Assembly (NCBI GenBank): GCA_023515725.1
Contig: JALDTO010000138.1
Coordinates: 1 to 14,230, forward strand
Source: Amoeboaphelidium protococcarum X5
Lineage: Eukaryota; Fungi; Aphelidiomycota
Reading direction: 5' to 3'
DNA length: 14,230 bases
This document shows positions 432 to 14,230 of this stretch, piece after piece. Position numbers and translations under genes: made by a program. The notes under the pieces were generated by a model, which searched no databases, was not told the DNA's origin, and saw nothing but the letters and a program-made list of their open reading frames with translations. Position 1 is the stretch's first letter. Each line of letters opens with the position of its first letter.

Positions 432-2951
432 TCACTATTCAACTATTACTCTCTTGCACTCGGATATTGCATCGGTGTATTTAGCAATGTTCTGCTGTGA
501 AGATTACAGCTGACGACTGAGAAATGCAAATCTTGCCTTCACACTCTCACCTGCCGAGAAGTGTCGATCTAGAGGTATAGAGTCAGCTTTATCCAAATAA
601 CCACTCAGTTCAGACATTTCCTTCTCCAAATCTTTCACCTTCTTCTCCTCTTTCTGGATCAACTCTTTGTAATACTTCATGTCCATGGTGGCCCGTGTTC
701 TGGCATTCTAATACGTTTTCCAGAATGCAGTTCTAAACAGCGGTTTGGATGGGCGAATTAACAGCGGGTGTCCATCTCTGTCATACTCAATCGTGATAAA
801 CTCTGCATTCTCCATCGAGAGGAGTGCCTAATCTTTACCATCCATAATGGCAGAGTACTTGATGGAATCGAATGATACCTTGCAATCTTCAAACTTTCGC
901 AGTCCATCATTATTATTATTATCATGATCATCGTTCTATCTCTTTGAATGATCCAAATCACCAATCTTCAAAGCCAAAGTCTTTAATACAAACCAGAATT
1001 GTGCGCTGGTCCACTTCTTTGATTAAGCAGATGGAGACGATACAACTGAAGTGGTCTGGGCCACAGCATCTATAGCCTCTTCCAATCCTTCACGCCTGAC
1101 TTCAATCACAGCCTTGGACACCAGATCTTGAAGAGATTCCACAGGATCAGTTCCCGCTCTCACCTTCTCTAATAACGCTTCAATATCAGACAATCTGCCG
1201 CCAAGAGTATTAATTACACGCCGTATAAACTAATCATCCACCTCACTATTCTCCGTAGCTCCTTGTGCAAATCTCTCTGTCAGAAATCGTTCAGCATCCT
1301 CTTTAGATGCATCTTTGAATGCCAACATTTCCACTATCCTCTGACTCTGTGCATCACAGAACCACTTATTGATCCTGCCACGTACATGTCCCAGAGTGGA
1401 AGCACTCTTACAGATGATAATCACATGAGCCACTCTGCCCTGGGCTAAAGCAGATGCCCATTACAGAATCTGGTCTATAAATCGCTAATTAGCATTGCTA
1501 GCACTCTCAGGCGGTGGATTCGGATCATCACTCAGATTGATCGTAATTACAGGATAGTCGATAGTCTGCTAAGATTACTGAATATTCTTCTATTTCTACT
1601 ACTGCTTGGCCACAATCTCTGATAGCGCCACCGCAGTCAAGTCCAAAATGCGCCTGATTTCAGTATCCGTCGATGTCGATACACCCAGCTTAGATCCAGT
1701 GGAGGTGGCAACCAGAGAGTCCAGCAAGTTCTACAACCATACAAATGAAGAGAAAATGGGATAATATCCAACTTGACGCGCCAGTCTAGGTGGTAAATCG
1801 GATTCTGATCTTGACATTGTCTCATCGCAGTTTATACTGATGCCCACTTTTTTATCTGCGAGTACACTCTGTACCAATTTCGATTTACCGTATCCCTGAG
1901 GACCGACCACCAACATCACAGAAGATGGAGGTTCCTTGAGCCATGCTTACAATTTCTACTTGACCTCTAGACGACCGGCGAAATCGCTCTAAGGATCTTC
2001 TGATAGCATAGATGACTCTTTACCATGACGTTTTGATGACTGGCCAACCTATCCAAACTTGTTAAAACTGTCCCGGATCCCCTCTGGTATCAGACTCTTA
2101 TAATCATATGAAAACCATGAAGATAGCTGGGATAGATTAAACCGTTTGGTAGCCATACTCTAAATACTAAATTTTCGTATAGGATCAAACACAGCATATG
2201 ATATACCCACTAGGATTGCTCCAGCAGCTGGCAAAGTCACTCTCGGATGATCCATAACCCATTTGCGAATATTATTAGTATGCATGTACTATTCATGCTC
2301 AATGAACAATTAGGCATTACCCAACTGGTATCGATGAAGACAAATCTTGGCACTTACGGCGTCCCTTATACGCCTATAGTTGACAAGAGCATACCTGGGT
2401 AGATCTTTATTATTGGACGTGAGAGGATGCTACAACTCAACAATCTTGCCATATTACCGGAATGCTTCATACAAGGCCTCCATGCTGGGCGATTCTTAGC
2501 TATTCAGAAATTGAACTCTCAGTCTATTAGTGGGCACACGTGTAGTAAGATCTTCCATAAACGGCTCACCAAGCACCTGGAAACATCGCGGTGATCTTCC
2601 ACGCAGCCATTAGAACGGATGTCGTGTGGCAAACTGTACAGATTTCAACTACTACCGGATGGCTTCAAATACAGAATCTGGTTATAATACGCCGGATTGC
2701 GCCGACTATGCACTCAACGCTGACTTTAGCTGCAGCAATACTCCACGATCTTTGACTCTTGATATTACATGGACATCACTGGATAATCGCTGCGGTACAA
2801 ATTCAGTCAGAGCCTCCTTTTCAACCAGCTTGGCCAGCGATTTCGACTCTAAATTAATCCAAGGCAGAGCTTTTGACGCCCAAGGTCTCAGATAAACTCC
2901 AATATAAAACTTGGGTAATTAATCAATCCAGAACTTGGTATTCTTAGACAT
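432..2951 (-). CDS. YME2: Mitochondrial escape protein 2 (Yme2/RNA12 family; RRM + transmembrane segment + P-loop/AAA-like domain), 839 aa with TAA/TAG=Gln
   Basis: One frame without TGA from ATG 2951 to TGA 432-434; track ORFs 504-686, 1230-1433 and 1731-1919 are all in it. Yme2-like motifs: VLGEPFMEDL, LYEAFRQYGKI (RRM), KDLPRYALVNY, WVMDHPRVTLP...FDPIRKF, VVGPQGYGKS, QVGYYPIFS, WASAL..GRVAHVI, LGGRLSDIE, WTSAQFW, C-terminal coiled coil. The start codon is less certain than the rest. Confidence 0.9.
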
Positions 2952-3243
2952 TATAATCTTTAATTACGGCAAGCTAAATAATTAAGAGCAATATTCGAAG
3001 TAAACGCTAGTGTGTTTCTGTAAGGAGAACTGTTGAATCACTCTGTGATGATAAAGTGAAAGATTTAACTCATCTGAGATCAGGATGACTTTACAATTTG
3101 ACTCGTATAATAAAGCTGAGAAAATAATAGTTTAATGATAGATAAATTAAAGTAAATATATTGCAGACTCAAAATAATACAATCAACGACTGCAAGTCAC
3201 TAATCTTAAGAGTCGCGTGATGTGATGTTATGCGAGCACTGTA

Positions 3244-12288: not shown

Positions 12289-13049
12289 AACAATATATAT
12301 TCTTGGTGTGGTTGGAATATCATTCCGAGGTTAAAGGAGATAACGGATAAGAAGTAGCTTAAAGTCGTACATGAATCGCGCTTAAAAATAAGAATTAGAT
12401 CTGCAATTAGAACCCATTGCTGACTTTTATGAATCTTTTTTGTAACAATAACGTCTGAATTTAACTGTAAACACTTTATATCCTGATGGTATGTATACCT
12501 TGACTTTAAGGTAAAATTCTCATCTAACTTACGCGGTAATTCTTGATGAACTTTCGAAATTTATGGTCTTAACCATTAGCAACGCATATTATTACTACGA
12601 GTTCACTAATATTTTACAACGTTATTTTCTATGTAGGAGCTGGTAATCGCGTTCAATTCGTTACATGGCTGTGGACTGGAGAACACTCTGTTCGGTTACG
12701 GTTGCAAAGAGATCTCGTTAATCGCGCGTGAGTTGGAAAAATGTCACATTAGCTGATGAGTTCGCAAATCAAAGGCCTTAAGACGCGAAAATAACGCACG
12801 TTCTTGAATGTCGCTCTTTCCTGTCCGTGCAGTTTTGCTCTTTACTGCCAAAGCGCGACAGAGAAAGAAAATCTCATTCAATTTTCACAACCTTTCCTCA
12901 GTTCCGGCCGTTCTCTGTGGTCGTCGTTGTTCTTCGCGTCTTTGTCCAATTCCAGATAATAACGAACGACCGTCCGATTCTTCTTTTCTTAGCAGACACA
13001 CATAAACACTACGCCTACGTAAGTGAACTATTACATTATACGCGGAGAG

Positions 13050-14230
13050 ATGTTGAATAATATTAGAAAAGTGACCGCTTTGCCTTAGTTGCGCAGCAAG
13101 TTATCACAATGTAATAGTCTATTTTATTAAAATTGAAAGTTCTGATTTTATATTAACTGTCGCCGTTAATGTGTAGTTCGAACTCTGGCTTCGTCATCAA
13201 ATGCAGCATCATCTACTGGTGAGGCTAACGGTCAGATCCGTACCGTCATTGGTGCCGTTGTCGATGTGCAATTCGACTCTGGAAACCTGCCTCCTATTTT
13301 GAATGCATTGGAAGTTTAGGGAAGTGGTTCGCGCCTGGTTCTGGAGGTGAGTCAGCACTTGGGTGAGAACACTGTGCGTACTATTGCCATGGACGGTACT
13401 GAGGGTCTCGTTCGTGGCCAGAAGGTTCTGGATACCGGCGCACCTATCAAGGTTCCTGTCGGTCGTGAGTGCTTGGGTCGTATCATGAACGTCATTGGTG
13501 AGCCTGTCGATGAGAGAGGTCCTATCAAGACCAAGCAGTCTCTGCCTATCCACGCCCAGCCTCCAGAGTTTGTGGATCAGTCCACTACTCCTGAGGTTCT
13601 GGAGACTGGTATCAAGGTTGTCGACTTGCTTGCTCCTTATGCTCGTGGTGGTAAAATTGGTCTATTCGGTGGTGCCGGTGTCGGTAAGACTGTGCTTATC
13701 CAGGAGTTGATCAACAACGTGGCCAAGGCCCATGGTGGTTTCTCCGTGTTCTGTGGTGTCGGTGAGCGTACTCGTGAAGGTAACGATTTGTACCACGAAA
13801 TGATCCAGACTGGTGTGATCAAGGTTGATGGTGAGTCCAAGGCTGCCCTTGTCTACGGATAGATGAATGAGCCTCCTGGAGCTCGTGCTCGTGTTGCTCT
13901 GACCGGTCTGACTCTGGCAGAGTACTTCCGTGATGAAGAGGGACAGGATGTGTTGCTTTTCATTGACAATATCTTTAGATTTACTCAAGCAGGTTCTGAG
14001 GTGTCTGCTCTGCTGGGTCGTATTCCATCTGCTGTCGGTTACCAGCCTACTCTGGCCACTGATATGGGTAGTATGTAGGAGCGTATTACCACGACTAAGA
14101 AGGGATCTATTACTTCCGTGTAGGCTGTCTACGTGCCTGCTGATGACTTGACTGATCCTGCTCCATCTACCACTTTTGCGCATCTGGATGCTACCACTGT
14201 GCTGTCCCGTTCCATTGCTGAGTTGGGTAT
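13050..14230 (+). CDS. ATP2: Mitochondrial F1 ATP synthase subunit beta (3' partial); exons 13050-13110 and 13177->14230
   Basis: Basic, acid-free presequence [27 protein letters not shown], then [18 protein letters not shown] (P-loop), [85 protein letters not shown]. The first exon is less certain than the mature region. Confidence 0.97.
13111..13176 (+). other. Spliceosomal intron of ATP2 (66 nt, phase 1)
   Basis: GTAATA...ATGTGTAG, AT-rich; it contains an in-frame TGA, so it must be removed to join the presequence to the mature protein. Confidence 0.8.

Follow-up and report, generated by a model that had tools for sequence, protein, structure and literature searches.

Coupled changes of UAA and UAG have arisen independently at least 13 times, one of them in Amoeboaphelidium protococcarum, which is, to our knowledge, the one known opisthokont case in which UAR (UAA and UAG) encodes glutamine. 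The code in question, NCBI table 6, reads UAA and UAG as Gln and UGA as stop, and is likewise used by ciliates (Tetrahymena, Paramecium, and Stylonychia), hexamitid diplomonads, ulvophytes, and the oxymonad Streblomastix. Codes in which UAG alone has become a sense codon have been described in the rhizarian exLh and in Iotanema (PMC5304391), as well as in phyllopharyngean ciliates (PMC11687900). For A. protococcarum, PMC5304391 and PMC11687900 attribute the report of UAR = Gln to Karpov et al. (2013, Protist 164:195).

Here, we compare with these systems a stretch of DNA of 14,230 nucleotides, referred to as the window, which makes up the entire 14.2-kb contig C138 in the assembly, with locus tags MIR68, of A. 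protococcarum, an aphelid that parasitizes algae. We consider it nearly certain that the observations are explained by the UAR = Gln nuclear code of A. protococcarum, operating with dedicated tRNAs and an altered eRF1.

Source genome and genes of the window

The source of the sequence is A. protococcarum X5; the accessions listed for this strain in PMC10057920 lie within the MIR68 range. As the window's own proteins contain read-through codons and were not matched to GenBank, protein identity was taken from C264, another contig of the same assembly, on which the window recurs in full at approximately 90% identity; a stop-free protein of 89 amino acids encoded on C264 is identical to GenBank KAI3630269.1 (MIR68_011704). 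An earlier note on this DNA had named A. protococcarum as its lead candidate, and the exact match bears this out. The same match speaks against the view that an undescribed fungus-like lineage reassigned these codons independently, a reading that has no point left in its favor and is extremely improbable.

Window positions 71 to 14230 are collinear with the second copy at C264:1426984-1441142 (L056, L057), with 90.4% DNA identity. Across the six genes, the two copies differ by 473 synonymous and 199 non-synonymous codon differences. The assembly totals 23.65 Mb, divided among 346 contigs, and its genes occur as near-identical pairs; a 200-kb portion of this genome had a GC content of 40.9%. 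A. protococcarum has been described as having a genome-wide duplication, a genome of about 24 Mb, and a GC content of about 40% (PMC10608142). The paired genes and the collinear copy of the window match this published duplication.

The window contains five complete genes and a sixth, ATP2, that is cut off by the contig end (Table 1). Pfam and protein searches were run on the separate stop-free pieces, and codons were tallied exon by exon. The gene at 11591..12288 encodes a TPR protein that resembles TTC36; the short pieces of this gene yielded no Pfam match. The WD40 protein has a C-terminal region (window 3247-4340, about 360 codons) that is low in complexity and very rich in TAA and TAG. In both copies, the reading frame of this tail continues to the same TGA, and the tail is predicted to be coding.

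Table 1. Genes, introns, and in-frame TAA and TAG codons of the window
Feature	Position in window	Strand	Evidence and remarks
YME2/RNA12-like	432..2951, start approximate	-	PF10443 on stop-free pieces; TGA 432-434
YME2, in-frame codons	435-2861		10 TAA, 20 TAG; gene ends TAG-TGA
WD40-repeat (DCAF-like)	3244..6351	-	WD40 Pfam matches; TGA 3244-3246
WD40 gene, in-frame codons	3247-6339		23 TAA, 28 TAG; Gln/Ser-rich low-complexity tail
Equilibrative nucleoside transporter (ENT)	6872..8317	+	PF01733; 5 TAA, 5 TAG; TGA 8315-8317
MCM2	8418..11357	-	Pfam MCM domains; TGA 8418-8420
MCM2, introns (n = 3)	about 10655-10716, 10998-11068, 11296-11354		Spliced contigs, public runs
MCM2, TAG at invariant Gln	9567, 10023, 9297, 10197, 9036		Column analysis, 80 homologous loci
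TTC36-like TPR protein	11591..12288	+	Intron 11966-12033 (spliced contigs); 4 TAA, 7 TAG; TGA 12286-12288
ATP synthase beta (ATP2)	13050..14230	+	PF02874/PF00006; cut off by contig end
ATP2, intron	about 13111-13176		Splice joint in spliced contig
ATP2, TAG at conserved Gln	13860, 14076, 14121		Columns vs homologues

Several observations concern the assembly and the distribution of the organism. The 5.8S locus was located in the organism's own genome. The rDNA at C233:161017-164169 (L168) consists of LSU-5.8S-partial SSU followed, across an N, by an LSU-5.8S repeat, and this locus is probably collapsed or mis-joined. Contig C346 (28 kb; L009), on which AT-rich tRNAs (Trp-CCA, Gln-TTG, Asn, and Tyr) are clustered, is probably the mitochondrial genome. 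A short minus-strand ORF at L069:7040-7408 matches the Crinkler effector N-terminal domain (PF20147) weakly and below the cut-off (E = 8.6e-4). The window stretch or close relatives of it were also found in metagenomes from biofilm, sediment, and freshwater and in one metatranscriptome (runs X7, X13, X15, and X17), indicating that environmental data contain the species or its near kin.

Reading of TAG and TAA

The six genes contain 80 TAG and 46 TAA codons (together TAR), 76 CAG and 38 CAA codons, and zero internal TGA codons when counted exon by exon. All five complete genes end in TGA, as had been claimed, with the TTC36-like gene doing so after its intron. Moreover, the TGA is conserved in place in the second copies of YME2, WD40, ENT, and MCM2. 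The earlier note had read TAG as Gln and TGA as the only stop. Both statements are right, but TAA, which is equally Gln and occurs 46 times in frame, was left out of its title.

Six-frame translation placed every in-frame TAG quoted in that note where it had been described, namely, the three ATP2 sites and the first four MCM2 sites of Table 1, together with one in ENT (7253) and one in the TTC36-like gene (11870). These codons lie within long reading frames bounded by TGA, a pattern well beyond what chance would give. We examined the conservation of such positions by column analysis. Among 80 metagenomic MCM2 loci, TAG falls in five columns with a conservation of at least 80%, and Gln is the residue of all five, present in 78/78, 70/72, 70/80, 60/70, and 71/75 homologues; the remaining codons in this analysis mostly correspond to their standard residues. 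For ATP2, homologues were obtained by a phmmer search of one ATP2 piece against 50% representatives (best 84%), and the three TAG sites had Gln in 79/84, 30/32, and 26/27 ATP-synthase-beta sequences. The claim that TAG occupies conserved Gln positions therefore holds for 5/5 sites in MCM2 and 3/3 in ATP2.

No TAA was found in a well-conserved column within the window, and a search with an eRF1 piece for archaeal loci gave no match. For these reasons, we used CAD on C264, with its CarA homologues, as the test of TAA. In CAD, a TAA directly follows the motif GICLGH, and Gln occupies this position in 79/80 prokaryotic CarA loci.

Codon swaps between the two copies involved both codons. TAG/CAG swaps were the most frequent (19), followed by TAA/CAA (10), TAA/TAG (5), and TAG/CAA (4); all remaining pairs stood at 4 or fewer. 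YME2 showed both TAA/CAA and TAG/CAG swaps with its second copy, and the WD40 gene showed many TAR/CAR swaps.

These data bear on whether UAG alone was reassigned and UAA kept as a stop. Consistent with such a code, ATP2 has TAG and no in-frame TAA, and TAG outnumbers TAA 80:46 in the window. This reading is contradicted by the 46 in-frame TAA codons and the lack of any complete gene ending in TAA, by the TAA at the Gln of GICLGHQ in CAD, by the TAA/CAA swaps between copies, and by the presence of tRNA(UUA) genes (see below). We regard a UAG-only reassignment as vanishingly improbable.

We also measured how much of 200 kb of C264 is covered by ORFs of at least 300 codons under different stop assignments. 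Coverage was 75% with TGA as the only stop. It fell to 15.7% when TAA was added as a stop, to 3.6% when TAG was added instead, and to 0.5% with the standard code.

Pseudogenes, assembly error, or U-to-C RNA editing that restores CAR could in principle account for the in-frame TAR codons, and the RNA evidence does take the form of contigs only. Nonetheless, the TAR codons occur in essential genes with a single function, in both copies and genome-wide, histones included, and cognate tRNAs exist. Among the differences listed, two sites (8748-8750 and 9141-9143) have CAG in a DNA run of another sample, whereas spliced contigs from run X9 keep TAG there. The retention of TAG in these contigs argues against RNA editing, and this set of explanations is exceedingly unlikely.

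A further possibility, modeled on Condylostoma or Blastocrithidia, is that UAR has a context-dependent dual meaning, encoding Gln internally and serving as a terminator near the 3' ends of mRNAs. YME2 ends in TAG-TGA, and eRF1 retains GTS and NIKS, both of which would fit such a system. However, TAR, which supplies about 54% of Gln codons, shows no excess ahead of TGA: over the final 1-30 codons its frequency was 0.032-0.041, versus 0.039 in gene bodies (97 ORFs). This speaks against UAR acting as a context-dependent stop. The TGA position kept in the second copies of four genes likewise weighs against a dual meaning, which we judge very unlikely.

The deposited annotation agrees with the reading of both TAG and TAA as Gln. 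The GenBank protein MIR68_004899 matches C158 DNA over 226 residues, in which one TAG and one TAA are translated as Gln and the end is at TGA, indicating that the depositors had already applied the UAR = Gln code. As judged from codon usage and alignment columns, the A. protococcarum code is the coupled UAR = Gln code of NCBI table 6, with UGA as the sole stop and Gln as the residue predicted to be inserted.

Candidate determinants of the code: tRNAs and eRF1

Genome tRNAs were found by Rfam, and their anticodon types were assigned by ARAGORN. The search for tRNAs with CUA and UUA anticodons, which the earlier note had proposed, yielded two genes of each kind, closest to tRNA-Gln. The two tRNA(CUA) genes, at C158:362956 and C200:31431 (L040/L058), are identical to each other; the two tRNA(UUA) genes are at C158:383536 and C200:16432 (L059/L060). 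CUA and UUA tRNAs share 67 identical positions of 74-75. Compared with the non-suppressor tRNAs of the same genome, their best matches are Gln(UUG), with 51-52 identical positions, and Gln(CUG), with 50-51, versus at most 44 for any other type.

Several structural features are common to the CUA and UUA tRNAs. They have U73, as in the tRNA-Gln of this genome, and a Gln-like acceptor stem. Their first acceptor pair is a U1/C72 mismatch, and the top pair of the anticodon stem is unpaired (C27/A43 or C27/U43), leaving a stem of 4 bp. A short anticodon stem has been linked to stop read-through in the tRNA-Trp of Blastocrithidia. Folding of the tRNAs relative to shuffled sequences gave uninformative z scores of -0.6 to -1.8, and the cloverleaf assignment rests on ARAGORN and Rfam RF00005. 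Taken from sequence, the probable identity of the CUA and UUA tRNAs is Gln.

The genomic surroundings of the tRNA(CUA) genes differ between the two contigs. On C200, a tRNA-Gln(CUG) gene (L064:810-884) lies 0.6 kb from the tRNA(CUA) gene. At the C158 locus matching this region (L065), ARAGORN identified no tRNA-Gln(CUG) neighbor. Close to the tRNA, the C158 locus instead contains the end of an LTR-retrotransposon-like pol with RT, RNase H, and integrase (MIR68_004899), and this element uses the host code, with TAG and TAA as Gln.

Two eRF1 copies (L003 and L004) are located on C244 and C136, and eRF1 itself contains many UAR codons. In one copy, the catalytic GGQ motif is encoded with TAG for its Gln (GGT-TAG); in the other, this Gln is CAG. 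The TASNIKS and YxCxxxF motifs of eRF1 govern stop recognition (PMC5304391). Stylonychia eRF1 owes its UGA-only specificity to positions 122-127 (PMC3025575). Inspection of the N domain, also proposed in the earlier note, revealed changes at both motifs. TASNIKS is altered to AAVNIKS, and the YxCxxxF region reads TSMYQCDNRF versus TSLYLCDNKF in human eRF1, so that human L124 and L126 are replaced by M and Q, respectively. GTS, E55, NIKS, and S70 are kept. We also considered L69Q as a diagnostic change and ruled it out because the eRF1 in PDB 8ip8 also has Q. By analogy with these studied motifs, we hypothesize that the substitutions in A. protococcarum eRF1 have a causal role in UGA-only termination.

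Our preferred reading, coupled reassignment of UAR to Gln, suggests the following mechanism. The CUA and UUA tRNAs would descend from a duplicated tRNA-Gln gene whose anticodon underwent a C36->A change. GlnRS would charge them by means of the U73 discriminator and the Gln-like acceptor stem, and they would decode UAG and UAA as cognate tRNAs. The altered eRF1 would have lost or weakened its recognition of UAR and would terminate translation at UGA.

Comparison with known codes

The published code of A. protococcarum and the GenBank MIR68 records concern the same organism, the same assembly, and the same code, and we found no difference at the level of the code. The code is thus already known, in a known species. 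The earlier note had anticipated that placement in A. protococcarum would remove the novelty and leave the observation standing, which is the case here. The origin of the tRNAs and the eRF1 substitutions may be the only unreported details. We raise, tentatively, the possibility that the pair of tRNA-Gln-derived UUA and CUA tRNAs, with U1/C72 and a 4-bp anticodon stem, and an eRF1 with AAVNIKS and MYQCDNRF form machinery that has gone unreported and that would offer a fungal-like system in which to test UGA-only termination, although we think this somewhat doubtful.

For work on this genome, the practical consequence is that analyses must use table 6, and findings based on internal stops or "broken" genes need to be reinterpreted under that table. 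The tRNA and eRF1 details provide concrete, testable determinants in a fungal relative, and they can be tested in yeast.

Compared with the UAG-only codes, A. protococcarum has the sense use of UAG in common. In contrast to them, UAA is also sense, which places it with the common coupled type. Its likeness to the other table 6 systems extends to CUA and UUA tRNAs derived from tRNA-Gln (a probable origin in A. protococcarum) and an altered eRF1 N domain, and the Stylonychia eRF1 changes at 122-127 overlap L124M/L126Q of A. protococcarum (PMC3025575). Unlike those systems, the A. protococcarum code has an independent origin in Holomycota and is accompanied by different eRF1 residues (AAVNIKS and MYQCDNRF).
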